This document shows, one piece after another, positions 5,001 to 64,000 of a stretch of 64,000 nt of DNA. The translations under genes were made by a program, and so were the position numbers. Source of the DNA: Macrostomum lignano. Its lineage: Eukaryota. The stretch covers positions 1-64,000 of the forward strand of contig NIVC01000017.1 of NCBI GenBank assembly GCA_002269645.1, given 5' to 3'. The notes beneath the pieces were generated by a model. The model did not search any database. It was not told the origin of the DNA and was given only the letters and a program-made list of their open reading frames with translations. Each line of letters opens with the position of its first letter. Positions within the stretch are counted from its first letter, which is position 1.

Positions 5001-8000
5001 TTCGGGTTTGTTTGCTGATGCAGAAATGTGGTGATAAGATGTGCAGAGATGAAGCGTGAAGACGTGTGGGTAAAAGTACATCAAGTGAAATATCAACGGA
5101 TATAATAGAGAGTCGGTTGAACTTTTAGTCCGAGGACTGGGGGGTCTCCACACAGCCTCAATTACCCTAGTTAATGCTGGCACCCATTTTACAGCTGGCT
5201 GGGTGAACTGAAGCAATGCAGAGCTGAGTGTCTTGCTAAAGGACACAAACTGTTCCGATTCTGAGTCGTGAGTCCGACGCTCTAGGCTACAATCTCCAAT
5301 TTGAATCCTTAACGAGTGGCAGCCTTTCAGTGCGAGAGTGACAGATATTCAAAAAGGGGGATAGACAGTTATTAGTAGTAGTGATATACCGTAGATGCAA
5401 TAACAGAGCAACAGAAAATCAACAGGCGAGTGACAGACAGTCAATAGAAGAGTGACAGACAGTCAATAGAAGAGTGACAGACAGTCAATAAAAGAGTGAC
5501 AGACAGTCAATAGAAGAGTGACAGACATTCAATAGAAGAGTTACAGACAGCCAATAAAAGTGTGACAAAAATTGATAGAAGACTGACAGATACTCGATAG
5601 AAGAGTGACAGGCATTCGGCAGAAGAGTAACAGGCAGCTGTGCATAAAAAGAGTGACAGGCAGTCAATAGAAGAGTGACAGGCATTCAGTAGAAAAGTGA
5701 CAAAATTTATAGATTGACAGGCAGTGCATAGAAGAGTGACAGGCAGTACATAGTAGACTGACAGGCAGTTAATAGAAGAGTGACAGGCAGTGCATAGAAG
5801 AGTGACAGGCAGTACATAGTAGACTGACAGGCAGTTAATAGAAAAGTGACAGGCAGTGCATAGAAGAGTGACAGGCAGTACATAGTAGACTGACAGGCAG
5901 TTAATAGAAGAGTGACAGGCAGTACATAGTAGACTGACAGGCAGTTAATAGAAGAGTGACAGGCAGTTAATAGAAGATGACAGGCAGTACATAGTAGACT
6001 GACAGGCAGTTAATATAAGAGTGACGGATATTCGATAGAAGAGTGACAGGCAGTGTATAGAAGAGTGACAGGCAGTGCATAGAAGAGTGGCAGATATTCG
6101 ATAGAAGAGTGACAGTCAGGCAGGCGGCTAGCCGTCACCGCGGTGACTCGCCCTCCCCCCCCCCGCAGAAGCAGCTGGCCGAGACCGGCTTCGACGAGGC
6201 CGCCGAGCAGCGACTGCTCGAGCGCCAGTCGGCCCTGCAACGCGAGCTGCATGAGACGGGCCGCCATCTGGAGGAATTCCAATCCGCTAATCCCCGGCTG
6301 GGATTCGACTACACGGACCCAGAGCCGCGGTTCGATCGCCGCCGCGTGCTCGGACCCGTATGCCAGCTGCTCGAAGCTGTTGACGAGAAATTCGCCGTGG
6401 CCCTTGAGGTCACCGCCGGCGCCAAGCTGTTCAACGTTGTGGTCGACACCGAGGCCACGGCCAAGCTGCTGCTGCAGCGGGGCCAGCTCAGGCAGAAGAC
6501 AACGTTTATACCGTTGAATAAGATCTCGGCCAGGTGCCTGCCTAAACACCAGGCCGATTTGGCTGTCCAGGTGGCCGGACAAGGCCGAGCTTATCCGGCC
6601 CTGGATCTGGTTAGGCGGGACAAATCCGTTGAGGCCGCCGCTCAGTTTGTGTTCGGCGCCAGCTTTGTGGTGCAGGATGATGAGGCCGGCAGGAAGGTGC
6701 GTTTCCTGGGTTTATGTCTATGGTCTTTTCTCATACTGTTGAGGTTATCTCTGATCCTCTTAGATCGCCATTTAGGTCACCTCTATGACCTCCCAGATCG
6801 TCATTAAGGTCATCTTTACGACCTCCCAGAAAGTCTTTAAGGTCATCTCTATGACCTCCCAGAAAGTCGTTAAGGTCATCTCTATGACCTCCCAGAAGGT
6901 CGTTAAGGTCATCTCTATGACCTCCCAGATCGTCATTAAGGTCATCTCTATGACCTCCCAGATCGTCATTAGGGTCATATGACCTCCCAGATCGTCATTA
7001 GGGTCATCTCTATGACCTCCCAGATCGTCATTAGGGTCATCTCTATGACCTCCCAGATCGTCATTAGGGTCATCTCTATGACCTCCCAGATCGTCATTAG
7101 GGTCATCTCTATGACCTCCCAGATCGTCATTAGGGTCATCTCTATGACCTCCCAGATCGTCATTAGGGTCATCTCTATGACCTCCCAGATCGTCATTAGG
7201 GTCATCTCTATGACCTCCCAGATCGTCATTAGGGTCATCTCTATGACCTCCCAGATCGTCATTAGGGTCATCTCTATGACCTACCAGATCGTCATTAGGG
7301 TCATCTCTATGACCTCCCAGATCGTCATTAGGGTCATCTCTATGAGACTCTCATACAGGGCATCTCTTTGACCCTCCCAGATCCTCATACTGCGCCATCT
7401 AAATGATCTAAAGCCTCAAGGGATCATGGCCATCCTCACCCGCAGGTGGCCTTCCATCGGGACATCCGCCGCCGGGCGGTGACCCTGGAGGGCGAGGTGT
7501 ACAGCCCGAGGGCACTCTCTCCGGCGGTTTTCGCGGCAGCCGCGAGCCGACGCTGCTGAAAGCCGCCAAGCTGCGCCAGCTGCGGGAGCGCGCCGAGGCG
7601 ACGCGGCGACAGCTGGCCGAAGTGGCCGAATCGGTCAGGCAGGCGGAGGCCTCGGCCGGCCGCTACCAGCAGCTGCGGCAGGACTTGGACCAGAAGCGGC
7701 ACGAGCTGGCTCTGCTGGAGCAGCGAATTGGCAACACGGATCACCAGCAGCTGGCCAAGCACCTGGAGGAGCTGCAGGCTGAGCTGGACAGCGAGCAGAC
7801 TGCAGCAGCCGAGGCCAACGCCGCCTTGAAGCGGCTGCGCGAACGGGAGGCCAGTCTGGCCGAGCAGGTCAAGGATGCCGCCGCTGTGCAGGAGCGAGAG
7901 ATGAAGGCGGCGCAGGTGAGAATGCTAGTCTAGCCAATAGGAGATGAAAAAAGGAATCTCAAAGATGATGATGAAGAAAGAGAATGGGCTGCTAATCTAG

Positions 8001-8674
8001 CCCACATCAGTGATAGAATAGAATGGATTGCTAATCTAGCCTACATTAATGATGAAGGAATAGAATGGATTGCTAATCTAGCCTACATCAATAAATGAGG
8101 GAATAGAATGGATTGCTAATCTAGCCTACATCAATGATGAAAGAATAGAATGGATTGCTAATCTAGCCTACATCAATGATGAAAGAATAGAATGGATTGC
8201 TAATCTATCCTAAATCAATGATGAAAGAATGGAATGGATTGCTAATCTATCCTAAATCAATGATGAAAGAATAGAATGGATTGCTATCTAGCCTACATCA
8301 ATGATGAAGGAATAGAATGGGTTGCTAATCTAGCCTACATCAATGATGAAGGAATACAATGGATTGTTAATCTAACAATCAAGCTCTACGTGGGCTCTAC
8401 TCCCATTATTTGCATCGGGACTTGAATTCAAAGTGGTTCAATTTGAACCCCAATCGCCCCCCTCCAGGCTCGCATAGCCAAGGCCCAACACGAACGGGAG
8501 GCGCGACGAGCCGATGTGGAAAACTGGCAGCCGCAGCACGACACCCTGCAGCTGGAGATCGAGGAGTTGCGCAAGGAGGCCGCCAGCCTCGAAGAGCAAA
8601 TCGCCGCCGCCAAGGAGTCCGTCGAGGCCCGCTCTGGAGAGGTTCAGGAGAAGCGGGTGAGTCGCTTGCTAGTG

Positions 8675-13130: not shown

Positions 13131-13595
13131 TTTAAATGTTGGATAAACTTTAGATTGAATATTACGAAAAGAGTAAATTTAAATAATAACAGTTATGAAT
13201 GTTGGCATTTTTTATCCCAAAAGTCAGTGCCCATCTACTATTGTAATCCACGTGCTGTACCTGAAACCAGTTTAAACCGGTTTTCTTCAAGTCTTTTTTG
13301 TGTATGCTGCACTGCTCAGCCCTACTCAAGCATGTGCTCATTCTTAATTATCACCTGCCCCCACTTCGTCTTTTGTACTTATATAATTGTTTTCTACATT
13401 ACTTGTACTTTTAATTACACCTATAGCAGCTGTTTTCTCTGCTAATTGAATAATTCCCATCTACCCGTTTGCAATGAAATAAGCAGTTATGTACGCTTTT
13501 GTTTAACTCATTTCATTGAGAAGACTTCTTATGAGTTAAGTCGATGGAGTATTGCTGTTTCAAAGCGGTGAAGCTCTTAGTGTTTTATAGACAGA

Positions 13596-14995
13596 CTGGG
13601 ATCTGGGAGGCTGGCCCAGCAACTGAGGATCCGGGAGGCTGATCCAGCAACTGAGGATCTGGGAGGCTGGCCCAGCAACTGAGGATCTGGGAGGCTGGCC
13701 CAGCAACTGACACTCTGGGAGGCTGGCCCAGCAACTGACACTCTGGGAGGCTGGCCCAGCAACTGAGGATCTGGGAGGCTGGCCCAGCAACTGAGGATCC
13801 GGGAGGCTGATCCAGCAACTGAGGATCTGGGAGGCTGGCCCAGCAACTGAGGATCTGGGAGGCTGGCCCAGCAACTGACACTCTAGGAGGCTGGCCCAGC
13901 AACTGACACTCTGGGAGGCTGGCCCAGCAACTGAGGATCTGGGAGGCTGGCCCAGCAACTGAGGATCTGGGGGGGGGCGCTGTCCCAGCAACTGAATGAT
14001 CTGGGAGGCTGGCCCAGCAACTGAGGATCTGGGAGGCTGGCCCAGCAACTGAGGATCTGGGAGGCTGGCCCAGCAACTGAGGATCTGGGGGGGCTGTCCC
14101 AGCAACTGAGGATCTGGGGGGGCTGTCCCAGCAACTGAGGATCTGGGAGGCTGGCCCAGCAACTGAGGATCTGGGAGGCTGGCCCAGCAACTGAGGATCT
14201 GGGAGGCTGGCCCAGCAACTGAGGATCTGGGAGGCTGATCCAGCAACTGAGGATCTGGGAGGCTGATCCAGCAACTGAGGATCTGGGAGGCTGGCCCAGC
14301 AACTGAGGATCCGGGAGGCTGGCTGCCCAGCAACTGAGGATCTGGGAGGCTGGCCCAGCAACTGAGGATCTGGGAGGCTGATCCAGCAACTGAGGATCTG
14401 GGAGGCTGGCTGCCCAGCAACTGAGGATCTGGGAGGCTGGCCCAGCAACTGAGGAGCTTGGAGGCTGGTCCAGCAACTGAGGATCTGGGAGGCTGGCCCA
14501 GCAACTGAGGATCTGGGGGGGGGGCGCTGTCCCAGCAACTGAATGATCTGGGAGGCTGGCCCAGCAACTGAGGATCTGGGAGGCTGGCCCAGCAACTGAG
14601 GATCTGGGAGGCTGGCCCAGCAACTGAGGATCTGGGAGGCTGGCCCAGCAACTGAGGATCTGGGGGGGGGGGCGCTGTCCCAGCAACTGAACGATCTGGG
14701 AGGCTGGCCCAGCAACTGAGGATCTGGGAGGCTGGCCCAGCAACTGAGGATCTGGGAGGCTGGCCCAGCAACTGAGGATCTGGGAGGCTGGCCCAGCAAC
14801 TGAGGATCTGGGAGGCTGGCCCAGCAACTGAGGATCTGGGAGGCTGATCCAGCAACTGAGGATCTGGGAGGCTGGCCCAGCAACTGAGGATCCGGGAGGC
14901 TGATCCAGCAACTGAGGATCTGGGAGGCTGGCCCAGCAACTGAGGATCCGGGAGGCTGGCCCAGCAACTGAGGATCCGGGAGGCTGGCCCAACAA
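13596..14995 (+). repeat. 28-bp minisatellite family B (CTGGGAGGCTGGCCCAGCAACTGAGGAT)
   Basis: About 50 tandem copies; the same unit occurs inverted at 24675-25040. Confidence 0.97.
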
Positions 14996-15419
14996 CAGGA
15001 AATGAGGAGCTGACTATTCATGATTACTATCAACTGAATTGAATAAGTGACAGAAAAACTGAAGAATTGTCCATTTATATGCGTTCTCTTGTTCATATCG
15101 TTCTCTAATGTGCTAGAAGCAAGAAAAGAGTAATTTAATCCTCTCAATCCGGACCCACCCGCAGGGCGTTTTCTTATTTGATGGAGACGCGACATCCGAA
15201 TGGAAACTGAGCCTAGAGCAGCCATTGATGGGCTTCGTGATAAAAGTATTGTCTAGTATGGCCTGCTTATAAGACTCAATCCGTGACCGGAGTCTTCTTT
15301 ACTTGGAGACAGGTCACGCGAAGCTTTATGGGGATAATTTTATGCATTGTTTTTGGCCGACTTGGATGCCAAATTAAGCATTGGCATTTCAGTAGTTTGA
15401 ATCTAAGAGCTCTGGCTTG

Positions 15420-19656: not shown

Positions 19657-20100
<444 letters not shown>

Positions 20101-20788: not shown

Positions 20789-25366
<4,578 letters not shown>

Positions 25367-25869: not shown

Positions 25870-28800
25870 ATGCTTAAACTCGGCAGAGTTGCACTTTTAG
25901 CACAGCCGCTAGTTGCCATGGTAATCTGGCTGCGCCTGCTCTCCGCGGCGGCTTCGTCACCACTGATTGGACCGGCAATTGGCCAGAATCCTCAGCTGCT
26001 CAGCGACATCATCCAGGTCACCCGGGCCAACTGGGAGCTCGCCTTCGCGCTCGACCTGGATGAATTTGATGGAACTTCTTCCGAGAGGTGACAGCGGGAT
26101 CGGATGGGATCAGATGGGATCGGATGGGATCGGATGGGATCAGATGGGATCGGATGGGATCGGATGGGATCGGATGGGATCGGATGGGATCAGATGGGAT
26201 CGGATGGGATCGGATGGGATCGGATGGGATCGGATGGGAGCAGATAGGATCGGATGGGATCAGATGGGATCGGATGGAATCAGATGGGATCGGATGGGAT
26301 CAGATGGGATCAGATGGGATCGGATGGGATTAGATGGGATCGGATGGGATCGGATGGGATCAGATGGGATCGGATGGGATCGGATGGGATCGGATGGGAT
26401 CGGATGGGAGCAGATAGGATCGGATGGGATCAGATGGGATCGGATGGAATCAGATGGGATCGGATGGGATCAGATGGGATCAGATGGGATCGGATGGGAT
26501 TAGATGGGATCAGATGGGATCGAATGGGATCGGATGGGATCGGATGGGATCAGATGGGATCAGATGGGATCGGATGGGATCGGATGGGATCGGATGGGAT
26601 CAGATGGGATCAGATGGGATCGGATGGGATCGGATGGGATCGGATGGGATCGGATGGGATCGGATGGGATCAGATGGGATCGGATGGGATCAGATAGGAT
26701 CGGATGGGATCGGATGGGATCGGATGGGATCAGATGGGATCAGATGGGATCAGATGGGATCGGATGGGATCAGATGGGATCGGATGGGATCAGATGGGAT
26801 CGGATGGGATCGGATGGGATCAGATGGGATCGGATGGGATCAGATGGGATCGGATGGGATCAGATGGGATCAGATGGGATCAGATGGGATCGGATGGGAT
26901 CAGATGCCTGAGATAGGATCGAATGGGATCAGATAGGATCAGATGGGATCGGATGGGATCGGATGGGATCAGATGGGATCGGATGTGATCGGATGGGATC
27001 AGATGGGATCAGATGGGATCGGATGGGATCAGATGGGATCGGACGGGATCGGATGGGATCGGATGGGATCAGATGGGATCAGGCGGGATCAGATGGGATC
27101 AGATGGGATCAGATGGGATCAGATGGGATCAAATAGGATCAGATGGGATCGGATGGGAGCTCTCTGGCTCACAGACGGCGGGATAAAAGGTGTCCCACTG
27201 GCTATTCCGCTCGGCACAGGCTGTCCTATCTAATGAAGAAGGTGCTCATGGGCGGCAAGACAGTTCTAAAGCTGTTCGATCTCAACTCCATGCCCGGCTC
27301 CAACTCCTCGTCCTCAATGGCTTTGTCATATCGGCTGCTCGAGTCGCGCACGAAGCTGGACCAGCTGCATCTGGACGCCGTCAACAACATGAGCAACCGC
27401 ATGGATTTGGTCTGGAGAAGAAAATTTGAGCGCTCCTGTTTGCTAGCGATGGCGGGCAGCCGGATGCTGGACAACTCCATCGGTCTGCCACCAGCCGAGC
27501 GGGCCCACGAGCTCACGCGCCTGCGGCAGATGATTTCCTCCGAGTCGCAGGAGCTGCTGGCGATCTGGCGGTCGATGTCCGGCACCGACAAGGCGTCGGC
27601 CAACAGCCTGCTGGAGCTGGCGATCAACTCCACTGACGGCAAGGACTGGCGAGGCTCGCTGACCTTCCTGCTGGCGATGGCGCGGACGGTGGTGCGCAGC
27701 GGCGAGCTGTCCATCGTGTCCGTGATGATCTCGCAGCAGGGCGGGATGCTGCAAAACAAGCAGAAGCTGGTGAGGACTCTGCTGCACACCTGGTCAATGC
27801 GGATGGAGTCCATCGTGGAGATTTTGAAGCGATGGAGCGAAGAAATCAGGAAGCTGTATGAGACGAATCTGGAGCCGATGGTCAGGAAGTTTGTTAAGGA
27901 TAGCGGGCGGATCGACAGCCGGTTGTTAACGCTGGGGTGAGCGCAGCCTGTGCCGTTGAGTCTTTGTGGACGTTGACCTGCTCGTTCCGCTGATGCTGCA
28001 CCTGGCGAGACTGAGGGGGATTGGAAAGTGATCTGGAGGACTGGGAGGCGTTATGGCAGACTGTGAGGTGTTATGATAGACTGGGAGGTATTATAATAGA
28101 CTGGCAGGTGTTATGGCAGACTGGCAGGTGTTATGATAGACTGGCAGGTGTTATGGCAGACTGGCAGGTGTTATGGCAGACTGTGAGGTGTTATGGCAGA
28201 CTGGGAGGTGTTATAATAGACTGGCAGGTGTTATGATAGACTGGCGGGTGTTATGATAGACTGGGAGGTGTTATGATAGACTGGCGAGTGTTATGGCACA
28301 CTGGCAGGTGTTATGATAGACTGGGAGGTGTTATGGCAGACTGGCAGGTGTTATGGCAGACTGGCAGGTGCTATGGTAGACTGGGAGGTGTTATGGCAGA
28401 CTGGCGAGTGTTATGGCACACTGGCGAGTGTTATGGCAGACTGGGAGGTGTTATGATAGACTGGGAGGTGTTATGATAGACTGGGAGGTGTTATGGCACA
28501 CTGGCGAGTGTTATGGCACACTGGCGAGTGTTATGACAGACTGGCAGGTGTTATGGTAGACTTTCAGGTGTTATGGCACACTGGCAGGTGTTATGGCAGA
28601 CTGGCAGGTGTTATGGCAGACTGGGAGGTGTTATAGCAGACTGGCGAGTGTTATGGCACACTGGCGAGTGTTATGGCAGACTGGCAGGTGTTATGATAGA
28701 CTGGCAGGTGTTATGGCAGACTGGCAGGTGTTATGGCAGACTGGCAGGTGTTATGGCAGACTGGCAGGTGTTATGGCAGACTGGCAGGTGTTATGATAGA

Positions 28801-29391
28801 CTGGAAGGTGTTAGGGCAGACTGGCAGATGTTATGGCAGACTGGCAGGTGTTATGATAGACTGGCAGGTGTTATGGCAGACTGGCAGGTGTTATGATAGA
28901 CTGGCAGGTGTTAGGCCAGGGATCCACTAGAAACCGAGGCCTGTTTGCCCCCATACAGATTGCAGGCACTGCTGTCCGATACGTTTCCCTGGCGGCACTG
29001 GATTGTCTTGGCCTACTTGGAGCAGAAAAGCTACGGCGGCAACACGGGCACCAGCGTGTTCTTCTGCGAGGGCCTTTACTTGTCTAAAGTACTTTTTGGC
29101 GGGCAAACCCTTGTCGTGGCCAGCTCTCAGAAGTCCAAGACTAAATTTAGGGCCGACTCGGCTTTGTCAGTCCTCGAAAGCGCTGAAGGCGACGGCCCGA
29201 AGAATGACGACGCCTTCCTGTGGCAGCAGCACGCGATGCCCCGGTTCGGCACTCCCTGCGTCACGGCCGCGTTTTTCGGCGCCCTCTGCTACGGCAGGTG
29301 CTTCATGGTGTGGGCGGCGAGGCCTGACCGGGTGGCCTACAGGCTGATGCGCACCGCCGGCTTCATGACTCACGCGTTGGCGTTTGGCTAG
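25870..29391 (+). CDS. Secreted 470-aa precursor protein, 3 exons; probable SE-cephalotoxin/rapunzel-like family member
   Basis: Exons 25870-26087, 27175-27936, 28959-29391. Both introns are phase 2 and GT-AG, and the total of 1413 nt is an exact number of codons. Hydrophobic N-terminus, RRRDKR furin-type site, long helical segment, then LSDTFPWRHWIVLAY...FCEG...GQTLVVASSQK and a terminal PDRVAYRL...HALAFG. The gene model is solid; the family call is from recalled motif patterns only. Confidence 0.65.
26094..27158. repeat. 10-bp repeat (C[A/G]GATGGGAT) filling essentially the whole of intron 1 of the secreted-protein gene
   Basis: Runs from a few nt after the donor to about 16 nt before the acceptor. 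Confidence 0.98.
28025..28915. repeat. 20-bp minisatellite (GACTGGCAGGTGTTATGGCA), intron 2 of the secreted-protein gene
   Basis: Tandem periodicity. Confidence 0.97.
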
Positions 29392-31675
29392 GGAGTGTGA
29401 CTCACGGCTGGGGTAGGGAGTGTGACTCACGGCTGGGGTAGGGAGTGTGACTCACGGCTGGGGTAGGGAGGGTGACTCACGGCGGGGTAGCGAGTGTGAC
29501 TCACGGCTGGGGTAGCGAGTGTGACTCACGGCTGGGGTAGGGAGTGTGACTTACGGCTGGGGTAGGGAGTGTGACTCTCGGCTGTGGTAGGGAGTGTGAC
29601 TTACGGCTGTGGTAGCGAGTGTGACTTACGGCTGTGGTAGGGAGTGTGACTTACGGCTGTGGTAGGGAGTGTGACTTACGGCTGTGGTAGGGAGTGTGAC
29701 TTACGGCTGTGGTAGGGAGTGTGACTCTCGGCTGTGGTAGGGAGTGTGACTTACGGCTGTGGTAGCGAGTGTGACTTACGGCTGTGGTAGGGAGTGTGAC
29801 TTACGGCTGTGGTAGGGAGTGTGACTTACGGCTGTGGTAGGAAGTGTGACTCTCGGCTGTGGTAGGGAGTGTGACTCTCGGCTGTGGTAGGGAGTGTTAC
29901 TTACGGCTGGGGTAGCGAGTGTGACTCTCGGCTGTGGTAGCGAGTGTGACTCTCGGCTGGGGTAGGAAGTGTGACTCTCGACTGTGGTAGGGAGTGTGAC
30001 TCTCGGCTGTGGTAGGGAGTGTGACTTACGGCTGTGGTAGCGAGTGTGACTTACGGCTGTGGTAGGGAGTGTGACTCTCGGCTGGGGTAGGGAGTGTGAC
30101 TCTCGGCTTGGGTAGCGAGTGTGACTCACGGCTGTGGTAGGGAGTGTGACTCACGGCTGGGGTAGGGAGTGTGACTCACGGCTGGGGTAGCGAGTGTGAC
30201 TCACGGCTGGGGTAGGGAGTGTGACTTACGGCTGGGGTAGGGAGTGTGACTCTCGGCTGTGGTAGGGAGTGTGACTTACGGCTGTGGTAGCGAGTGTGAC
30301 TTACGGCTGTGGTAGGGAGTGTGACTTACGGCTGTGGTAGGGAGTGTGACTTACGGCTGTGGTAGGGAGTGTGACTTACGGCTGTGGTAGGGAGTGTGAC
30401 TCTCGGCTGTGGTAGGGAGTGTGACTTACGGCTGTGGTAGCGAGTGTGACTTACGGCTGTGGTAGGGAGTGTGACTTACGGCTGTGGTAGGAAGTGTGAC
30501 TCTCGGCTGTGGTAGGGAGTGTGACTCTCGGCTGTGGTAGGGAGTGTTACTTACGGCTGGGGTAGCGAGTGTGACTCTCGGCTGTGGTAGGGAGTGTTAC
30601 TTACGGCTGGGGTAGGAAGTGTGACTCTCGGCTATGGTAGGGAGTGTGACTTACGGCTGTGGTAGGGAGTGTGACTCTCGGCTGTGGTAGGGAGTGTGAC
30701 TCTCGGCTGGGGTAGGGAGTGTGACTTACGGCTGTGGTAGCGAGTGTGACTCTCGGCTGGGGTAGGGAGTGTGACTCTCGGCTGGGGTAGGGAGTGTGAC
30801 TTACGGCTGGGGTAGGGAGTGTGACTTACGGCTGTGGTAGGGAGTGTGACTTACGGCTGTGGTAGGAAGTGTGACTCTCGGCTGTGGTAGGGAGTGTGAC
30901 TCTCGGCTGTGGTAGGGAGTGTTACTTACGGCTGGGGTAGCGAGTGTGACTCTCGGCTGTGGTAGGGAGTGTGACTTACGGCTGGGGTAGGAAGTGTGAC
31001 TTACGGCTGGGGTAGGGAGTGTGACTTACGGCTGTGGTAGGGAGTGTGACTCTCGGCTGGGGTAGGGAGTGTGACTCTCGGCTTGGGTAGCGAGTGTGAC
31101 TCACGGCTGGGGTAGGGAGTGTGACTCACGGCTGGGGTAGGGAGTGTGACTCTCGGCTGGGGTAGGGAGTGTGACTCTCGGCTGTGGTAGGGAGTGTGAC
31201 TCTCGGCTGTGGTAGGGAGTGTGACTTACGGCTGTGGTAGCGAGTGTGACTTACGGCTGTGGTAGGGAGTGTGACTTACGGCTGTGGTAGGGAGTGTGAC
31301 TTACGGCTGGGGTAGGAAGTGTGACTCTCGGCTGTGGTAGGGAGTGTGACTCTCGGCTGGGGTAGGGAGTGGGACTCTCGGCTGTGGTAGGGAGTGTGAC
31401 TCTCGGCTGGGGTAGGGAGTGTGACTCTCGGCTGTGGTAAGGAGTGTGACTCTCGGCTGGGGTAGGGAGTGTGACTCTCGGCTGGGGTAGGGAGTGTGAC
31501 TCACAGATGGGTTAATGGTGTGACTCACAGATGGGTTAATGGTGTGACTCACAGATGGGTTAATGGTGTGACTCACAGATGGGTTAATGGTGTGACTCAC
31601 AGATGGGTTAATGGTGTGACTCACAGATGGGTTAATGGTGTGACTCACAGATGGGTTAATGGTGTGACTCACAGA
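29387..31675. repeat. 25-bp G-rich minisatellite (GGGAGTGTGACTCACGGCTGGGGTA) switching at about 31495 to a 24-bp unit (GTGTGACTCACAGATGGGTTAATG)
   Basis: Tandem periodicity; both units share the core GTGTGACTCAC. Confidence 0.97.
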
Positions 31676-32769
31676 TTAAGCCCCTAAGATGTACCCTGCA
31701 ACAGGGTAATCAGTGTAGTGAATTAAGTAACCCTCTAGGAGTAGTCATGGGAGACAAGTAATTAGTATATTAAGAGTAGTAGTTTTATTTTTTAATTTTT
31801 TTAAATCTTTTTTATTTACACCATGTGTCCTTGCTTTTCTGTTCGGTGATAATTTTCAAAGGCGATGATATTCAAAGCTAATTTTGAATATAAGCAAAAT
31901 ATCTGTACAAAGTTATATTGCGAAGGAAAAGTACAAGTTTATATAACACTTGTACTAAACGAGTTACTAAGTGAAATTAATGAAGTCTCATAGTGGAGTC
32001 TCATGGGTGAGATTCGTTTATGCAGAGATTTTCTCAGTGGAGTCTTGTGGGTGAGATTCCTTTGGAGCTGAGATTTGCTCAGGGGAGTCCCACAGATACT
32101 CGTACTGAAGTAAGATCAGTTGGAACATTAAAAGCTAAAATAAATTGAAACTAACAAAGCGGCTAAAATAAATTACTGAGGTAATTCTCGAGTCAGTCGA
32201 AGACTGATTTCAATAAACAGTTTATTTTATCTGTAAACGTTGTCATGGTTACGAGTGTACAAACACAGCTGGTTTCAGCCTTTAACATGCAGCTGTATAG
32301 CCAAAACGAATCCAAGAGAGGATACCCTCGGGTATCGAAACAGGAAACAGGCGAAAAAAAGCTATCATTTCTACTGTCAGTAAACAGCTGTGTACATAAA
32401 GGTAAAAATGTATCAAAATCTTAAAAAAATCTTCTAAAATCGTTTTGATTTTTTTTAGCAATTTACCATGGCAGCTGAAGTAGAACTACGGACGCAAATC
32501 GTATATGTTATGCTGGAGGCCGCTTAGTCAATGTGTTCATGGATCGGTTATTTAAAAATCTAGTTAAGAATAACAAAAAATCCTATTTTGCCAATAGCCC
32601 ATTGTTGCTGGCGAACTGTTTTTTCCTGCCGAAAATTTCATCAGTCCTAGAATTTCAGATTTTCAGCATCTGGACTGGAAGTTATTTATAGAACTCCATG
32701 GTACAGAATGATCTCTTCGAGTTGTCTATGGGTGAACCCCCCGCCTCTGCACGAGCGTCTCCTCCAGCA

Positions 32770-40045
<7,276 letters not shown>

Positions 40046-41643: not shown

Positions 41644-44600
41644 TCAGAAGCTTGTATTTTGCATTGCCGGGGAATAGGTGCAACCACCCGCTGTGTCATA
41701 GTAATAATTGTAGTAATGTCCTGTATCGAAGGACGGAAATTGCTGCTGCTGCGTTAGATTCTGCTGCGGTTGCAGTTGAGGATAAAAGTACATTTGATGC
41801 TCGCCCTGTGAGGGAAACTCCTGTTCAAGCAGTTTCGATTCATTATAGTAGTTTGGATGCTGCTGCGTGCTTGAGTGAAACCCATACTGATCGCGCTTTA
41901 GCTTTTGATCGTCAAAGCAGTCTGTGTTGTAACCGCATGCGCCTGTGCCTGCAGCGCTCGTCGGCATCGGTGTGGCTGCAGCGGCCGGTTCCATCGCGTC
42001 CGACGCGGCAGACGATGCTCCCTAAAAAATTTCAAGCATATTTATTCCTGAAGAAGAACTATTAATTGGATATCTATAGCCCAGACCGTATGACATCTAA
42101 ATTGAATCTGACGGTGATGACAGTGGCAGAGCGGTAAAGCGCCAGACTCGCGCGCCACGACCCCTCTGGTTCAATTCCGTACGCGGTCACATCAATTTGG
42201 GGCTTGTGAGTCCATAAGAATTTACAGGGGCCTTGTCATGCGATTGTGCTCCAACCCCCAAGGCACAGAGAGTGTACATGCCTGACGATTAGAAAGTGTA
42301 CACCCTGTATGAGCATGAGTATGAGTGCTGTGCCTGCGTCAGCTCAGGAGTCAGCGGAACGGGCAGACTTGCCTCAGCGCTGGCTGTGGGACCATGTCGC
42401 CAGGGTGCCTTCCTGTGAATCTTATTCTTATTATTGTTGACTTTCATAACCAGCAGTAGCAATGTCAAAGAAAACAAACCGCCTTGTCGTTCGACTTCCT
42501 CGCTCCCTCCTCTGTGACCGTCTTGTCCTGACGCTGCCGTCTGAACCGCTTCCGCCTGCGCAGGTAGCTGCCATTGTCGAACATGCTGTAGGCCTCCGGG
42601 TGCAGCGTCCAGTAGCTGCCTTTGCCCGCCTTAGCTGAATCGCTTCGCGGCACCTTCACGAAGCACTCGTTCAATGACAGATTGTGCCTGATGGAGTTCT
42701 GCCAGCCCTGCTTGTTGTCCCGATAGTAAGGGAAGCTGCGGGCCAGAGTCGGTCAAGTGCAGTGGATCTGTGTCATTTTCATATCATTAATATCTCTGAT
42801 CCATTGTACATTCTTATCTCTGATTCTAAGTACTATCTTATCTCTGATCCTGAGTACTATCTTATCTCTGATCCTGAGTACTATCTTATCTCTGATCCTG
42901 AGTACATTCTTATCTCTGATCCTGAGTACATTCTTATCTCTGATCCTGAGTACAATCTTATCTCTGATCTAATTCCATATCTAATGTACTTTAGATTCAT
43001 TTTTCTACTTCTGGAACCCAAGCACTATACTTGAACACTATCAGAGAATAGACCCTGATAGTGTTCGTTGAACCAACGTTTTGCCTAATTTAACTAATTA
43101 AGCACTTTGATTCATTAGAAACGTCTATGAAGCGGTATATCGTCAAAGGAGCGTCTCAGCTTCTAGCAGGCGGCCTCTTAATTGCCAAGAGAGGTGTGGA
43201 AGCAACCGCGGCAATATTTGCCAACTTTAGCAAAGCAGTTTGGTATCGTCTCTTAAAAAAGGCGGTCTGCTGTGGTTTCCACTTTATCACGATAAACCCG
43301 AACCCACCCTGCTCTCAGGCTATTGTACTCCGGCTTATGTGACATTCATCAACTGACGCACCTGTCAGAAATGACGCCTCACAGTGAAGATGATGGGGGT
43401 ATTTTTTTCATTATTCGAGTTTTGCGCTTTCTAACTGAGTTGCAGACCCAGCAGTATAATGTGCTGCTGTAAGGCCACTAATTCGCGCAAAAGTAGGCTG
43501 GCTTTGAGTAGGCTTGCGCATTTGCAGCTGGTCTTTCTGAGTGCCTCGAATAGACAGCTATTTCTATTTTAAAGCTGCGACCTTCTGCACCCCCAAATTA
43601 CTCAGAAAGCGAAGTGAGATCGAAGCATTCAATAAAGAGGGAGTTGCTTTCAGAGCAAAGACACATTAACTGTATTAGAACTAGATTAGCGATCCATTTT
43701 ATCCTTGATTGATGTAGGCTAGATTAGCAATCCATTCTATTCCTTCACTGATGTAGGCTAGATTAGCAATCCATTTTATTCCTTCACTGATGTAGGCTAG
43801 ATTAGCAATCCATTCTATTCCTTCACTGATGTAGGCTAGATTAGCAATCCATTCTATTCCATCACTGATGTAGGCTAGATTAGCAATCCATTCTATTCCT
43901 TCACTGATGTAGGCTAGATTAGCAATCCATTTTATCCTCGATTGATGTAGGCTAGATTAGCAATCCATTCTATTCCTTCACCGATGTAGGCTAGATTAGC
44001 AATCCATTCTATTCCTTCACTGATGTAGGCTAGATTAGCAATCCATTCTATTCCTTCATTGATGTAGGCTAGATTAGCAATCCATTTTATCCTCGATTGA
44101 TGTAGGCTAGATTAGCAATCCATTCTATTCCCTCATTTATTGATGTAGGCTAGATTAGCAATCCATTTTATCCTCGATTGATGTAGGCTAGATTAGCAAT
44201 CCATTCTATTCCTTCACTGATGTAGGCTAGATTAGCAATCCATTATATTCCTTCATTGATGTAGGCTAGATTAGCAATCCATTCTATTCCTTCACTGATG
44301 TAGGCTAGATTAGCAATCCATTCTATTCCCTCATTTATTGATGTAGGCTAGATTAGCAATCCATTTTATCCTCGATTGATGTAGGCTAGATTAGCAATCC
44401 ATTCTATTCCTTCACTGATGTAGGCTAGATTAGCAATCAATTCTATTCCTTCACTGATGTAGGCTAGATTAGCAATCCATTCTATTCCATCACTGATGTA
44501 GGCTAGATTAGCAATCTATTTTATCCTCGATTGATTTAGGCTAGATTAGCAATCCATTCTATTCCTTCACTGATGTAGGCTAGATTAGCAATCCATTCTA

Positions 44601-45638
44601 TTCCCTCATTTATTGATGTAGGCTAGATTAGCAATCCATTCTATTCCTTCATTGATGTAGGCTAGATTAGCAATCCATTCTATTCCTTCATCACTGATGC
44701 AGGCTAGATTAGCAATCCATTCTATTCCTTCACTGATGTAGGCTAGATTAGCAATCCATTCTATTCCATCACTGATGTAGGCTAGATTAGCAATCCATTC
44801 TATTCCTTCACTGATGTAGGCTAGATTAGCAATCCATTCTATTCCTTCACTGATGTAGGCTAGATTAGCAATCCATTCTATTCCTTCATCACTGTTGTAG
44901 GCTAGATTAGCAATCCATTCTATTCCGTCATCATTGATGCAGGCTAGATTAGCAATCCATTCTATTCCGTCATCATTGATGTAGGCTATAGATTAGCAAT
45001 CCATTCTATTCCTTCATCATTGATGCAGGCTAGATTAGCAATCCATTCTATTCCGTCATCACTGATGTAGGCTAGATTAGCAATCCATTCTATTTCTTCA
45101 CTGATGTAGGCTAGATTAGCGATCCATTCTATTCCTTCATATCATGCAGGCTAGATTAGCGATCCATTCTATTCCTTCATATCATGCAGGCTAGATTAGC
45201 GATCCATTCTATTCCTTCATATCATGCAGGCTAGATTAGCGATCCATTCTATTCCTTCATATCATGCAGGCAAGATACGCACCGGTCCTTGATGAACTGA
45301 TAGATACCGCTGAGGGTGGCCCTGTGCTCAGGCTGAGCAGTGATAGCCATGCTGATCAGAGCAATGTAGGAATACGGCGGCTTGGCCAGCTCCTGATTTT
45401 GGACAGCGACAAAATGCTCCAGCTGCAGGTTGAGCTGCTCCATCGGTCCCACTGCTGGAAGCTGGGTCCGTCCTAGATGAAGCTGGCAAGCTGGGGCAAC
45501 AAGGTCTTGCGCATAGCTGCATGCAGGAACTGGTGGCGGTTGCTGCGGTTGCTGGGCCGTTGTCAAGGTGTCCCAGGTGATTCGATCAAAAGTTTGCACA
45601 GTTTCTGTTGCTGCCTCCAGTAGATTGAGCTGCTCCAT
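41644..45638 (-). CDS. FoxC: Forkhead-box transcription factor, most similar to the FoxC (C/S/L1) group, 329 aa, 3 exons
   Basis: Exons on the minus strand: 45638-45283, 42735-42480, 42021-41644 (990 nt). Forkhead domain [34 protein letters not shown]|[30 protein letters not shown]...GKGSYWTL...[14 protein letters not shown]. The Fox family call is certain; the subfamily call is moderate. Confidence 0.85.
42110..42410 (+). mobile_element. SINE family 1, most complete copy (tRNA-derived head), in Fox intron 2
   Basis: A box TGGCAGAGCGG at 42124-42134 and B box GGTTCAATTCC at 42168-42178, followed by a body shared with four other copies. It does not close a proper tRNA acceptor stem. Confidence 0.8.
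42835..42968. repeat. 24-bp minisatellite (TATCTCTGATCCTGAGTACTATCT), Fox intron 1
   Basis: Tandem periodicity. Confidence 0.9.
43678..45270 (-). repeat. Satellite family A array (reverse orientation on +), Fox intron 1
   Basis: Reverse complement of the 42-bp unit; begins about 12 nt from the donor. Confidence 0.97.
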
Positions 45639-46663: not shown

Positions 46664-47059
46664 ACCGCTAAGTCTATGGTCACGTGACTCTGGCTTTCCA
46701 CTAGCTCCTGAGTGTTAGCTCGCACCTTAGGCGCTCGCAAGCTAAGAAGCTGATGTGTACAGTTTTTATTTCAATCGTCTATGCCCAGCCTACTCTGCGG
46801 CTTGTCTGTTAATAAGTAAAATGATTGTCATTAATATTCAATACTAATTTATCAACTTAGCTTTATCACAATCGTCAGGCTTTAGCATGGCTGGAGCGCC
46901 TACGCCAAAGTCGAGCAGGTCTCGCGGTCGACAGTCAAAAATCATTGATTTTTTAAATCAGACTACCGCTGGGTCGAGTCTTAACAATCAAGACCGGCAA
47001 TTACCAGCTCGCGAGCAGATGTCTGATGCGACTGTAAATCAAGTAACGTCGCGTTCGCA

Positions 47060-47429
47060 TCAGCGACTACTCGCCGCCGCGTCAATTACAACACTGGTCA
47101 ACGCCGCGGTGCGCAGCAGATCCAACCGACAGCGGACGGCCACCTGGACAAGAGCCGAGCGGGCGGACTACGCACAATTCCGCTCAGGAAAACACGCAAG
47201 GCTGCGAGTGAATGCCCATCGTATTGGCTGGACAGCGGATCCGACATGCCGGAGGTGCGGTGACGAACCAGAGAACCTCCAGCACGTCCTTCTCGACTGC
47301 CCGGCTACGGAAGTGGACCGCCGCACTCTGGGCATCACGGCCCTCGCGGGCCTCTGCAAGATGCCAGTAGAATGTCGCAAGCTCTGGCATAACTTTCTAA
47401 GGCATCGTAAACGCAATGCCAAGCGTTGA
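47060..47429 (+). mobile_element. 3' fragment of a non-LTR retrotransposon ORF2 (C-terminal CCHC zinc knuckle)
   Basis: YAQFRSGKHARLRVNAHRIGWTADPTCRRCGDEPENLQHVLLDCPA fits the QxRxGH...CxxC(x8)H(x4)C tail of I/R1/Jockey-type LINE ORF2. No RT domain is present. Confidence 0.75.
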
Positions 47430-50777: not shown

Positions 50778-51716
<939 letters not shown>

Positions 51717-52314
51717 TGCCAATGCCTGGGGTCCCTGCCTACCCAATCGGACAAAGAGGCAGCTGTAGTCCATTGTTCAGCAGCAATTACCTACTGACAG
51801 GCAGGTCAAGAGCCAAGTGGCTGTAGAAGGAACCGCTGGCAGTTATCCGGCATCCAAGTCAGTTTGGCAGCGACAGTTTTACTCCCCTGGAGAATCCCTC
51901 GACAAGGCATGGATAGATATGCCCCAATAATGATTGCGCAACCTTCAACGCTGCAATTTCTGTATTTCTGTAGGCCGGCACAGATTTTACTCTTTGGGGG
52001 TCTGGATTGATTGAGGTCACGAGAAAAAAGCATTGAGAGTTTTGGGGCCAAAGTGATTACGCAATGCTTTGTAATTGGCGTCGGTCACGGCTCAGAGCTG
52101 ATTGGCTGGGCACTGGGGTGTGGAACAGAGGAAAAGAGGTCACTTGTTTATTATGCCCACCTCTACCTGTCATCCCGACTGCACCGGCACTCCCACCTTC
52201 CTCATCGCAGATTCCTTAAGCGAAGGCAAAAAATATGCCTGCCTCTGCTGATTAAAGCACTGCTGCATCTGGGACTCTGCAACACGAACACCGGTACGTA
52301 CTCGGATGATGTCA

Positions 52315-52895
52315 GCTAGACTAGCAATCCATTCTATTCCTTCATCATTGATGTAGGCTAGATTAGCAATCCATTATATTCCTTCATTGATGTAGGCTAG
52401 ATTAGCAATCCATTATATTCCTTCATTGATGTAGGCTAGATTAGCAATCCATTCTATTCCTTCATCATTGATGTAGGCTAGATTAGCAATCCATTCTATT
52501 CCTTCATCATTGATGTAGGCTAGATTAGCAATCCATTCTATTCCTTCATCATTGATGTAGGCTAGATTAGCAATCCATTCTATTCCTTCATCATTGATGC
52601 AGGCTAGATTAGCAATCCATTCTATTCCTTCATTGATGTAGGCTAGATTAGCAATCCATTCTATTCCTTCACTGATGTAGGCTAGATTAGCAATCCATTC
52701 TATTCCTTCACTGATGTAGGCTAGATTAGCAATCCATTCTATTCCTTCACTGATGTAGGCTAGGTTAGCAATCCATTCTATTCCTTCATTGATGTAGGCT
52801 AGATTAGCAATCCATTCTATTCCTTCATTGATGTAGGCTATAGATTAGCAATCCATTCTATTCCTTCATCATTGATGCAGGCTATATTAGCAATC
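52315..52895 (-). repeat. Satellite family A array (reverse orientation on +)
   Basis: Reverse complement of the 42-bp unit. Confidence 0.96.
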
Positions 52896-53407
52896 CTGGG
52901 GTAAGCAGATCACGGCAGTTAGAAGAGGAGAGGCCACAGCGATCAGCCGGATTAGCTGTAGAATCACACGTACACAACAGCCTCATGTGGCAGTCTTCAA
53001 TGCAGTTTGCCCACACGAGCGTAGTTTGCGCCGCCACTGCAGAGCGGCAGGGGAAATCTTTAGCTATCGATAACATGGATCGGCTCCCGTCCACTATGCT
53101 ACAATAGATTAGACGCAATTAAAACGGAGAACGAGGGAGTCGCAAAAAAGAAAGATTCCAGGAAAAAGAAGTGCCTAGATGACCTCGAGTGGCCGACCTT
53201 CTATTGCGAATGAGAGTTACGCAATCCGGCAAGGGTAGGGTAGGGAAATGCTGCCATGCAGGTCGTCTCCAGGGATTAGTAGAGCTCTCCATGCAGCCGG
53301 TCAGATGAGGCAAGGGAGGCGCAGCTGAGGGAGAAAAATAGAGCCTGTCTTGACACGGGATGACCTCAGCCGGCTAGGAGAGAGAGAGAGGACAGGCCCA
53401 GAAAGGC

Positions 53408-53674: not shown

Positions 53675-54892
53675 GCACTTCCCACAGTGTGGGGATTTGA
53701 GCTTTTTATGTAGATAGATTCACAGAAAGAAGTCTTGCATCTTTATAGAAGCAAGCATAGGTAGAAAAAATTGCTTTTTTTCTGTCAAGTTTTTTACAGT
53801 CTTTGTGCCTTTGCGTCTTTTGCCGGGCGAGAACTGGGTGAGCCCGAACTCCCCGGGTTCCCCAAATAATTAAGTCTGCGAGACAGTTGAGCATAATTAA
53901 CAGGCATGGATTGTTGACTTGCCGATGACATAAAATAAAAAGTGAGAATCTCTCTGTCTGCTGGATAATATTTGATGAGGCAATGCGGGGGCCGTTTTTT
54001 ACAATCGGATCGATTGCGTAACACTCGCGACCTGGCTCCTCGTCCTTTGTTTGAGCCCAGCATGCAGTTGTCACAGCCTCAGCTGCTATTATTAGCTATA
54101 TACAAAGGGCGACTTTTGTGGTGAAAAAACATTGTAAACTTTTTGAGGTGAAGCAGCGTATGTGTGCGGCTTGCGTGCTCCACTTCCTGCGCACCTTCTG
54201 ACCTCCGCGCGGTTACGCTGGAACCCCCTCCCCCGGCCAAAGTTAGCCATGCAGCCGTTTCCTACATCCGTTTCTCACGCTGAATCCGATTCTACACCAA
54301 TATTCCCTCAGTTCTAATTTCTAATTCCTATGGGTCGCGTCGCTAGGCGGGCCAGGGACTTCTAGAGAGGGAGACGGTATCTGGATTGGAAGGCTCACTG
54401 TTTTTTTTTCAGGAAACTCTCAGGCATTTGCACACAAACTCTGAATTTTTTTCCGAAACTTTTCAGCTTTCTAGCACCAAATTCCTGATCTCTCACCTGG
54501 AATTCTGGAACAGGTTTATTAAAAATTTAAGTAATAAAACGTGAATTTATTCTGAACTGTCAACAATTTTCGGCAGTTAAACACAGTCAAAGCCTGGCTT
54601 AGACCGAGCCCAGGTGGTTCCTGTCTAGATTTCAACCTTCAGGCGTCCATGGGCTAGGATACTGCCGAGCCGACAGTAAGGGAATATTTTTGCTTAATTT
54701 TATTATAGCCTGGATGTTGTTGTATGCATGTAATTTGAACAGAACACAGAGTGCGGGATGCTGGGCGGGCTTGATACATTAAAAGAGGGAGAGCGCATGA
54801 GAATGCGTCATCATGGAATCCCGCAGTTCCTCTTTAGTTGTTCCCATATTGATACACTCAGTCAGGATTGCTTGGTTGTCATCGTGTGGAGT

Positions 54893-55036
54893 GAGTCAGT
54901 CAGTCAGTCAGTCAGTCAGTCAGTCAGTCAGTCAGTCAGTCAGTCAGTCAGTCAGTCAGTCAGTCAGTCAGTCAGTCAGTCAGTCAGTCAGTCAGTCAGT
55001 CAGTCAGTCAGTCAGTCAGTCAGTCAGTCAGTCAGT
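54893..55036. repeat. (TCAG)n microsatellite ending about 30 nt before the bZIP exon acceptor
   Basis: Direct. Confidence 0.97.
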
Positions 55037-55070
55037 CTGTCAGCTATCATTTCTCAATCCCCTCAGGCTG

Positions 55071-56415
55071 ATGGCAACTCAGCCAACTTCTTCAAGTGCC
55101 GATGATGTTCAAAGCGTAGACACCAGCGAGGGGGCCGCCGCGTACACCGAGGAGGAGCAGGGGCCGGACAAGGCGAAGTACCTGGCCAGACGGATGAAGA
55201 ACAACGAGGCGGCCAGGCGCAGTCGAGAGAAGCGCCGACTCAACGACGCAGCGATGGAGCGAATGATCGCCGATTTGACGCAGGTTTGGCTTCGTATACT
55301 CTGAGACAGAAAATACACATGATGCTACTCAGTAGCGGCATCAGTAGTCTAAAAAGAATGTTTGGTATTACTGTGGAGAAATTAAATTTTCAACAAGCTT
55401 TAACTAATAATTGCAGGAGAACAAGCTGTTGCAGATGGAAATTCGTTATCTGCGCAAACGGCTCTGCATCTCGCGACCGGCCGTAGCTGAGCGACAGTCG
55501 GACGCAGGTGCGAATGCAGCTAAATTTGTATTTCAATTCTTTGCGGTGCGGTAAACACTTGACACCCAAGTTCTCACGTCAGAAGGAACAAGAGTCTGTA
55601 TGGTCAGGAGCATCAGTAGTCAGTGAGTCAGGAGCATCAGTAGTCAGTGTGTCAGGAGCATCAGTAGTCAGTGTGTCAGGAGCATCAGTAGTCAGTGTGT
55701 CAGGAGCATCAGTAGTCAGTGTATCAGGGGCATCAGTAGTCAGTGTATCAGGGGCATCAGTAGTCAGTGTATCAGGGGTATCAGTAGTCAGTGTATCAGG
55801 GGCATCAGTAGTCAGTGTATCAGGGGCATCAGTAGTCAGTGTATCAGGGGCATCAGTAGTCAGTGTATCAGGGGCATCAGTAGTCAGTGTATCAGGGGCA
55901 TCAGTAGTCAGTGTGTCAGGAGCATCAGTAGCCAGTGTATCAGGGGCATCAGTAGTCAGTGTGTCAGGGGCATCAGTAGTCAGTGTGTCAGGAGCATCAG
56001 TAGCCAGTGTGTCAGGAGCATCAGTAGCCAGTGTATCAGGGGCATCAGTAGTCAGTGTGTCAGGGGCATCAGTAGTCAGTGTGTCAGGGTATTAGTGTCA
56101 GGAAAGCCTCTAGTGTCGGGTGACAGTGTCAGGAAAGCGTCTAGTATCAGAGTGTTAGTGTCAGGAATGCCTCAGTGTGTCAATAATAAAAGCCACAGTA
56201 ATAAAAAATGCAGGAGTTATAGGCAATAAGATCAAATCCGCTTAAATTAAAAGAGTGCAATTCAAATCAACAATTCAGACCCGCCTCAGCCAGCGTCACC
56301 GGCCCTTCATTACTCGAAGCAACAATCAGACTCTGCAGAAGCAGCAGCAGCAACAACAGCATCTACAAAATTGGATGACCCGCTTGTGTCTGATGGAACT
56401 GCTCAAGTGCAGTAA
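55071..56415 (+). CDS. NFIL3: bZIP transcription factor, NFIL3/E4BP4/vrille-like, at least 146 aa
   Basis: Exons 55071-55283, 55417-55507, 56279-56415, phase-consistent. Basic region and zipper KYLARRMKNNEAARRSREKRRLNDAAMERMIADLTQ|ENKLLQMEIRYLRKR; the SREKRRLND segment is characteristic of NFIL3/vrille. An acceptor at 55066 implies an upstream exon or trans-splicing. The third exon is less certain. Confidence 0.82.
55600..56100. repeat. 24-bp minisatellite (GTAGTCAGTGTATCAGGGGCATCA), bZIP intron
   Basis: Tandem periodicity. Confidence 0.96.
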
Positions 56416-63498: not shown

Positions 63499-63797
63499 CA
63501 TACATGCGCAACAGTCGGCCGAGTCGGCCGATCCGGCCGACCGATTTGGCGGCCAACCAAGGAAGTCGCAAAAATGCCCACCCGAAAAAATAACCAAATA
63601 GTAGTACTAAGTAGCTGACGAGGCATTTTGGATTAATAACACAGTTATAGTTACTCCTGCCGTTTACCTAAAGTTGCGTTAATTTTGCTTTAGGGTTTTT
63701 TTTACATGTAAGTCGCATTTTTGGCCAAAAACTACGTCACATTTTTGTTAAAACTAAGTCGCATGGCCGACCGAATTTTGGAGGTTGCGCATGTATG
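63499..63797. mobile_element. 299-bp hAT-type MITE with a perfect 14-bp TIR and a perfect 8-bp TSD
   Basis: TIR CATACATGCGCAAC / GTTGCGCATGTATG; TSD ATTTTAGT at 63491-63498 and 63798-63805. Confidence 0.92.
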
Positions 63798-64000
63798 ATT
63801 TTAGTGATAAAAGGCTTTTTTTAATAACTGTGTTTAGTTTTTTGTGAAGATTTACAATTTACATGTATGTTTTGTATATTTTAAAATAATGTTAGAAGAT
63901 ATATATATATACTGTGTATACAAAAGTATATTAAGGAAAGAATCAAACTATCATATTGTTTTTTGTATAAGAGGATGAGAATACATGTGTACTCAATGAG

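Follow-up and report, generated by a model that had tools for sequence, protein, structure and literature searches.

We analysed a stretch of 64,000 nucleotides (nt) of the Macrostomum lignano genome (contig NIVC01000017.1, positions 1 to 64,000 of the forward strand; hereafter the window), in which an earlier reading of the letters without database searches (the sequence-only reading) had proposed a three-exon gene for a secreted, cephalotoxin-like protein at 25870-29391. At this locus, the segments 25870-26087, 27175-27936 and 28959-29391 of the + strand join into a single frame of 1413 nt, corresponding to 470 codons with one terminal stop. The predicted product of 470 amino acids (aa) matches the strings quoted in that reading, including SSERRRDKRCPTG, LSDTFPWRHWIVLAY and the end HALAFG followed by the stop codon. 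Taken together, the data presented here make it quite probable that 25870-29391 is a real and intact three-exon M. lignano gene, encoding a 470-residue, highly divergent member of the cephalotoxin-like/Rapunzel family.

Exon 1 (25870-26087) extends from the ATG to residue 72 and supplies two bases of codon 73; its open reading frame (ORF) is preceded by an in-frame TAA at 25864. Intron 1 (26088-27174) has a length of 1087 nt, is in phase 2 and has GT-AG ends (GAGAG/gtgaca at the donor, ctcacag/ACGG at the acceptor). A 10-bp minisatellite, (GGGATCGGAT)n, at 26096-27158 makes up 98% of this intron, and only ~24 nt of it are unique sequence. Exon 2 (27175-27936) encodes residues 73-327, which comprise a body predicted to be helical, with homology to the core of cephalotoxin-like proteins. 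Intron 2 (27937-28958, 1022 nt; CTGGG/gtgagc and ccccatacag/ATTG) is likewise a phase-2 GT-AG intron, 86% of which is a 20-bp minisatellite at 28039-28913. Exon 3 (28959-29391) begins with the third base of codon 327 and encodes the C-terminal domain up to residue 470, followed by the TAG stop; all three exons and both introns are read on the + strand. The stop-free join, the GT-AG ends and the phase-2 introns bear out the proposal that three ORFs splice in phase into one 470-aa protein, and the two arrays confirm that its introns are satellite-filled.

We scored the exons for codon usage with log-odds trained on two intronless paralogue genes (database proteins are referred to by our labels P0001 to P0007 where they need to be told apart). 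The proposed frame was favored in all three exons, at +0.03 to +0.11 per codon compared to -0.35 to -0.87 in the other frames. The GC content at third codon positions (GC3) was 0.62 in exon 1, 0.83 in exon 2 and 0.80 in exon 3, and overall GC was 57-61% in the exons compared to 34-43% in the unique flanks. In an alignment of the spliced product to the intronless paralogues, the exon 2/3 junction was crossed without a gap, and in tblastn searches against the window exon 3 alone was matched by the paralogues P0007 or P0005 (E 1.4e-11). The N-terminal extension is also of similar length in the two proteins that can be compared, with 119 residues in the 470-aa protein and 121 in P0007. Because the codon bias is frame-specific, the alignment runs through junction 2 without a gap and exon 3 is found by tblastn, the exon arrangement is beyond what chance would give.

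The best database match was the M. lignano entry UniRef A0A1I8FN62 (P0001, 773 aa), with 79% overall BLASTP identity, in agreement with the suspicion of the sequence-only reading that the gene belongs to a flatworm. P0001 contains long identical runs over the shared exon-encoded stretches and obviously frameshifted segments between them. Since its N-terminus comes from the final exon (25130-25366) of the alpha-amylase-family gene that lies upstream, P0001, the only database model of the gene, is a chimera fused to the neighbor. An exact look-up of the four splice products that are possible, among ~15 billion database proteins, found none of them; this look-up says nothing on expression, as the paralogue clusters too hold only NCBI and UniRef entries. 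With no splice product on record and a chimera as the sole model, the gene was indeed hidden, as had been claimed. By fusing the gene to its neighbor, this model also shows how gene predictors fail at kilobase-sized minisatellite introns.

An exhaustive phmmer run over 1.84 billion representative proteins returned only P0001, which is the same gene, and P0002 (E 2.3e-17, 79.5 bits, 26% identity, with query residues 119-463 on residues 10-340 of 346). Word-indexed homology searches with the query, with P0002 and with a two-sequence profile found M. lignano proteins only. There was no match for the query or the family alignment in local Pfam, PDB sequence and PDB profile searches, and metagenome scans with the full-length and C-terminal-domain alignments detected no relatives. 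The paralogues are all ‘hypothetical proteins’: PAA54936.1 (P0007, 457 aa), PAA78885.1 (P0002, 346 aa), and PAA47548.1 and PAA54935.1 (336 aa). In a precomputed table, P0002, P0003, P0007 and the 336-aa neighbor of P0007 carry the Pfam domain PF27742 ‘CTXL_M’, a name that we infer to stand for ‘cephalotoxin-like, middle’. PF27742 is newer than our local copy of Pfam, in which the query, P0001 and even P0002 have no match.

The M. lignano paralogue family comes in two forms, one of 457 aa with a signal-like start (MRILLLCLLSLCAAATDG) and one of 336/346 aa without a signal, whose Met aligns with M120 of the query. At the locus L001:10001-13032 (NIVC01002837.1), intronless genes for the 457-aa and 336-aa paralogues form a convergent pair, and adjacently numbered protein accessions suggest that this pair may recur on two further contigs. 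The paralogues are colinear with residues 114-470 of the query at 24-27% identity, and have in common with it the KLD helix, FLLAM, the (F)xxRxW motif, VVAS, four invariant Cys and the ...FG C-terminus; P0007 also begins with a signal-like sequence, and its N-terminal extension is as long as that of the query. Several features set the query apart. Whereas the L001 pair is intronless, the query gene is split by two satellite-filled introns and is without a paralogue in the window. Its product has the motif RDKR, two extra Cys and a degenerate form of the hydrophobic helix before the KLD helix, and it is divergent enough that its chimeric database model lacks a recorded Pfam match. The C-terminal ~130 residues are common only to the query and the M. 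lignano paralogues, and the four Cys that are invariant across the paralogues (C363, C427, C437 and C441) are all encoded in exon 3. By sequence comparison, residues ~344-470 are thus a four-cysteine C-terminal domain common to the two types of M. lignano paralogue. A weak tblastn match of this domain at 63761-63982 (- strand) was not reproduced with the paralogues and was dropped as chance.

We then compared the M. lignano proteins with cephalopod cephalotoxins (CTX), for which an alignment of decapodiform sequences, including Acanthosepion esculentum SE-CTX, is available in the supplement of bioRxiv 10.64898/2026.04.09.716377. A profile built from nine DECA-CTX/SE-CTX sequences (alignment columns 81-480) matched the paralogues over the helical body, with 27.4 bits for P0005 (P 6.5e-11) and 24.8 bits for P0007; the maximum among 3000 composition-matched shuffles was 6.3 bits. 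A reciprocal M. lignano profile (query, P0007 and P0005) detected cephalopod sequences with up to 24.0 bits (CTX2_DPEA, P 7.9e-10). With hhalign, the M. lignano alignment matched the cephalopod CTX alignment at E 1.1e-4 over 198 colinear columns (query residues 115-343), from the ...KLD... helix to a shared (Y/F)PWxxW motif. In the query, this family motif is F336-P-W-R-H-W341 (28984-29001, + strand), which closes the helical body and corresponds to (Y/F)PWY(S/T)W in cephalopods. Both hmmsearch and hhalign set the query FPWRHW and the cephalopod YPWYSW/FPWYSW on each other, and the paralogues have FDHRNW or FDRRYW at this position. As judged by these alignments, residues ~115-343 and the helical core of the cephalotoxin-like family, which ends in FPWxxW, are homologous. 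Because the query alone scored 4.5 bits against the cephalopod profile, its membership in the family is assigned transitively, by homology to the paralogues, and by colinearity and the motif. The cephalotoxin-like assignment of the sequence-only reading thus stood by way of the paralogues (PF27742, and P of about 1e-10 with the cephalopod profile) and of FPWRHW, but not by a match of the query itself.

The same reading had likened the C-terminal domain to a (K)YPWRxWxVxxY...CxG...GxNxVVAS motif of SE-cephalotoxin-like and rapunzel-like proteins. Against cephalopod CTX, only the 15 columns of the PW motif were aligned (E 0.043), with nothing beyond. In the region concerned, the query reads FPWRHWIVLAY...FCEG...GGQTLVVAS and the paralogues have GxRNVVVAS, and cephalopod CTX have G(S/V)N(F/L)VV(I/T)W in place of VVAS. 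The absence of the EGF-type tail modules of the cuttlefish toxin was correctly noted. The ORF ends at residue 470 with the same ...FG end as the paralogues, and 3′ of it only minisatellite is found to ~31.7 kb, with no EGF or other tail modules.

SE-cephalotoxin (UniProt B2DCR8) and the decapodiform DECA-CTX1/2 of salivary glands resemble the query in a signal-like N-terminus and in a helical body of ~230 residues from the KLD helix to (Y/F)PWY(S/T)W, with profile-level homology to the M. lignano family. They differ in size, as they are ~1050 aa long compared to 470 and continue after ...FWVAAGFK with a Cys-rich EGF-like module and further domains; moreover, paralytic activity has been shown only for the cuttlefish protein. 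The Rapunzel proteins (zebrafish rpz1-5 and Schmidtea RPZ1-7) are regarded in the literature as relatives of the SE-cephalotoxin-like proteins (PMC6315956); they are compact and have no toxin-type tails. In planarians, these are secretory goblet-cell products of another flatworm, with signal peptides and/or transmembrane (TM) segments (PMC13563047). The roles reported for Rapunzel proteins, which are fin-ray growth, IRF7/TBK1 regulation and use as a goblet-cell marker, are nonetheless not toxin roles. The Acropora millepora protein B7W114 is described as secreted and as 50% similar to the N-terminal part of SE-CTX (BLASTP E 8e-43; PMC3748352), but it is a cnidarian protein from the skeleton matrix (PMC3748352). 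Forms that match the N-terminal part of the toxin therefore exist outside cephalopods. Members of the family occur widely among animals: in the venom of cephalopods and the skeleton matrix of corals, in nemerteans, in the fins and immunity of fish, and in the gut goblet cells of planarians. The gene is a new, very divergent and unannotated member of this already known family, so the novelty that had been attached to it was rated too high, and the gene itself leaves current knowledge of the family unchanged. We know of no cephalotoxin-like/Rapunzel member whose structure has been solved or whose biochemical mechanism is known. M. lignano is a flatworm tractable by transgenesis, and a core-only member together with signal-bearing and signal-less paralogues could offer a handle for localization and knock-down.

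The N-terminus of the predicted protein bears on where it would act. Residues 7-25 form its most hydrophobic stretch (Kyte-Doolittle [KD] mean 1.89), with MLKLGR before it and the small residues AAASS after it. By inspection, residues 1-29 could be signal-like or, given the length of the stretch and its Q, P and R, possibly a signal anchor. Residues 30-72 are acidic (7 D/E and 1 K/R), and past the hydrophobic start the protein has six Cys and three NxS/T sites. RDKR75-78 (27179-27190, + strand) matches the furin-type motif RX[KR]R and is followed directly by Cys79. The furin site proposed in the sequence-only reading is thus present as a motif before the first Cys; as a processing site it is less secure, as a protein of the query's composition would be expected to contain 0.39 RX[KR]R motifs by chance, and as the site is not present in P0007 or elsewhere among the paralogues and would be lost in the query if the acceptor that places exon 2 at 27220 were used. 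The helix before the KLD helix, which is hydrophobic in SE-CTX (KD 2.08) and P0007 (1.75), is lysine-rich and only weakly hydrophobic in the query.

Several members of the family have been described in the literature. SE-CTX is the one sequenced cephalopod salivary toxin and paralyses crabs, and its toxic region and mechanism are stated to be unknown (bioRxiv 10.64898/2026.04.09.716377). Transcripts similar to both SE-CTX-like and Rapunzel proteins are highly expressed in the stingray venom gland (PMC6315956). Schmidtea mediterranea has seven Rapunzel homologues, which are expressed in goblet cells and all of which are predicted to have signal peptides and/or TM domains (PMC13563047, PMC10715919, PMC7117911). 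The planarian proteins, the nearest flatworm relatives that have been studied, are markers of intestinal goblet cells, respond to TBK1 and are found outside the producing cells after challenge (PMC13563047, PMC10715919). In zebrafish, rpz genes act in fin (fin-ray) growth, and RPZ5 is cited in PMC8113963 and PMC13563047 for degradation of phosphorylated IRF7 and interaction with TBK1.

Against this background, the best-supported reading of the 470-aa protein is that it would enter the secretory pathway of gland or goblet-type cells and have a role in defense, immunity or digestive secretion. We consider the chance slightly better than even that the hydrophobic N-terminus would route the protein into the secretory pathway, either as a cleaved signal or as a signal anchor, because the cephalotoxins of cephalopods, the Rapunzel proteins of planarians and the M. 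lignano paralogue of 457 aa share this build. The later steps are held with less confidence. Tentatively, gland or goblet-type secretory cells might make the protein and release it to the gut lumen or to the outside, where it could serve in defense, immunity or digestive secretion and its helical body might engage a target, possibly a membrane. That a proprotein convertase would remove the acidic pro-segment at RDKR78 is more doubtful still.

A number of observations weigh against the gene, its family assignment or its secretion as set out above. The gene model was drawn from genomic sequence and homology, not from transcripts. Exon 1 has no detectable homology and a lower GC3 than the other two exons, and an out-of-frame ATG at 25852, 18 nt 5′ of the start, opens an upstream ORF of 8 codons that overlaps the start codon. 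At the other end, a 2.1-kb minisatellite directly adjoins the stop codon, and there is no variant of the poly(A) signal before ~31887 and no AATAAA before 32139. Besides the splice products that are missing from the exact look-up, there is no counterpart of the gene in the deposited NCBI M. lignano protein set, and P0001, which holds most of the 470-aa protein, has no precomputed Pfam match on record. As for the family, the score of the query alone lies inside the shuffle range, and the hhalign probability for the match between M. lignano and cephalopod alignments was only 56%. AlphaFold2 models had a mean predicted local distance difference test score (pLDDT) of 38.7 (single sequence) or 36.6 (5-sequence alignment); at this low pLDDT they agree only loosely on a helical body to ~residue 335 followed by a mixed segment, and are unusable as fold evidence. 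Finally, since a signal-less 336-aa paralogue form exists and zebrafish RPZ5, by its action on IRF7 and TBK1, is read as intracellular, secretion would not be universal in the family.

Some of these observations would fit other readings of the locus. One is a real gene with the splicing of the UniRef model, which uses an alternative acceptor of intron 1 (first base of exon 2 at 27220, + strand; ggcacag/GCTG), in frame and 45 nt further on, and for intron 2 the donor 27880 with the acceptor 28966, likewise in frame. The former would remove RRDKRCPTGYSARH and the latter 21 residues, and with either or both the product would have 434-455 aa and lack RDKR. All of these sites have GT/AG and keep the frame, and they were picked by an automatic predictor, but the model in question is the chimera with the last exon of the amylase gene, frameshifted stretches included. 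For intron 2, the donor GTGAGC (27936) is nearer to the consensus than GTCAGG (27880), 28957-58 is the first AG past a long pyrimidine run, and the 21 residues that would be deleted are kept, residue for residue and without a gap, in the intronless paralogues and the cephalopod cephalotoxins. Because of the consensus donor, the first AG and the residues matched in relatives, the intron 2 sites of the sequence-only reading are better supported; for the acceptor of intron 1 at 27174, the support consists of its being the first AG and of the 119-residue extension compared to 121 residues in P0007. Overall, splicing of the UniRef type seems quite improbable. A different start is conceivable too, with exon 1 outside the gene and translation beginning in exon 2 at M92, M97 or M120, which would make the product an intracellular Rapunzel-like protein without a signal. 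The first residue of P0004 and P0006, neither of which has a signal, aligns exactly with M120; this, the weaker GC3 and missing homology of exon 1 and the reported action of RPZ5 on IRF7 and with TBK1 are what such a protein would lead one to expect. Yet the exon 1 ORF is in phase, has a good donor and a frame-specific codon bias, and provides an N-terminal extension as long as that of the signal-bearing P0007, and transcription from exon 2 would depend on a promoter within a minisatellite of 1 kb. We regard the intracellular form as unlikely.

We regard it as similarly unlikely that 25870-29391 is a silent or decaying copy stranded in satellite-rich DNA, with an intact ORF in a gene that is not, or no longer, expressed. 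Such a copy would account for the lack of the gene in the NCBI protein set and among the 15 billion proteins, for introns that are kilobase-sized satellites in a window rich in tandem repeat (41%), for the absence of a poly(A) signal for ~2.5 kb past the stop and for the upstream out-of-frame ATG. It is harder to reconcile with 470 stop-free codons over three exons, a GC3 of 0.8 and canonical splice sites, or with the retention of all paralogue-invariant residues, including the four Cys, several W and the FG end; the neighboring conserved GH13 gene, moreover, has the same intron architecture. A further proposal is that of a secreted pro-toxin, activated by furin at RDKR/C and used for prey capture, defense or reproduction, as the sequence-only reading had envisaged. 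The family does include the crab-paralysing SE-CTX, and the query combines a signal-like N-terminus, an acidic segment and RDKR directly before the first Cys. However, the motif is subject to the chance expectation, the absence from P0007 and the dependence on the acceptor described above; the toxic region and mechanism are not known even for SE-CTX; other family members, namely the goblet-cell Rapunzels of planarians and the zebrafish rpz proteins in fin growth and IRF7 control, are not toxins; and the hydrophobic helix of SE-CTX and P0007 has become lysine-rich in the query. An activated pro-toxin is accordingly rated as rather improbable, and prey-capture toxicity and furin processing of the 470-aa protein are speculation.

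The introns of the gene raise a question of their own, for which the neighboring gene is informative. The alpha-amylase-family (GH13, PF00128) gene at 21781-25366 (+ strand) has exons at ~22012-22215, 22707-23133, 23874-24632 and 25130-25366, with PF00128 matches at ~22012-22200, 22707-23132 and 23895-24557. Its stop codon at 25364-25366 and an AATAAA at ~25442 bound the cephalotoxin-like locus on the 5′ side, and exon 1 (25870) lies downstream of them. Three of its introns are filled with arrays, namely (ACCT)n at 22375-22704, a 20-mer at 23140-23643 and a 28-mer at 24673-25052. Because three introns of a conserved GH13 gene are filled in the same manner, satellite-filled introns are normal at this locus and no sign of gene disruption. 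It is also conceivable that both introns of the cephalotoxin-like gene are recent gains, in which minisatellites carrying or creating GT...AG ends turned an intronless gene into a spliced one; the paralogue genes at L001 are intronless, and the query introns are both in phase 2 and 98% and 86% minisatellite. The evidence is equally compatible with old introns into which satellites spread, as happened in the amylase-family gene, the paralogues then being retrocopies. Since the neighboring conserved gene shows satellites invading pre-existing introns, we rate intron gain as improbable.

On the 3′ side, a 25-bp minisatellite at 29389-31504 (84.7 copies, ~2.1 kb) begins at the gene itself, the TAG stop being its first triplet. 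It is followed by a homogeneous 24-bp array (100% matches) at 31494-31676. Elsewhere in the window we detected fragments of an SMC hinge domain (6109-6807, + strand, E 5e-20), of a TTC39/Iml2 TPR protein (36787-37287, - strand, E 2e-10) and of a bZIP_2 domain (54813-55304, + strand, E 5e-9), as well as a zf-RVT retroelement fragment (46887-47429, + strand) whose 26.3 bits are just under the Pfam cut-off of 27.5. Rfam and tRNA scans of the window gave no match. The 41% of the 64,000 nt that are tandem repeat are made up of dozens of distinct mini- and microsatellite arrays, such as (GACA)n at 19659-20100, (AGAC)n at 33032-34584, (ACAG)n at 50782-51716 and a 21-mer at 5-1804. A 28-bp satellite (ACTGAGGATCTGGGAGGCTGGCCCAGCA) forms two arrays ~10 kb apart and in opposite orientation, at 13595-14996 and 24673-25052, the second of which lies in the last intron of the amylase-family gene. 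A repeat family of 39-43 bp (GAATAGAATGGATTGCTAATCTAGCCTACATCA...) forms five arrays (7968-8374, 34984-36682, 39015-39555, 43681-45259 and 52307-52896), three in one orientation and two in the other, which suggests a dispersed or mobile satellite.

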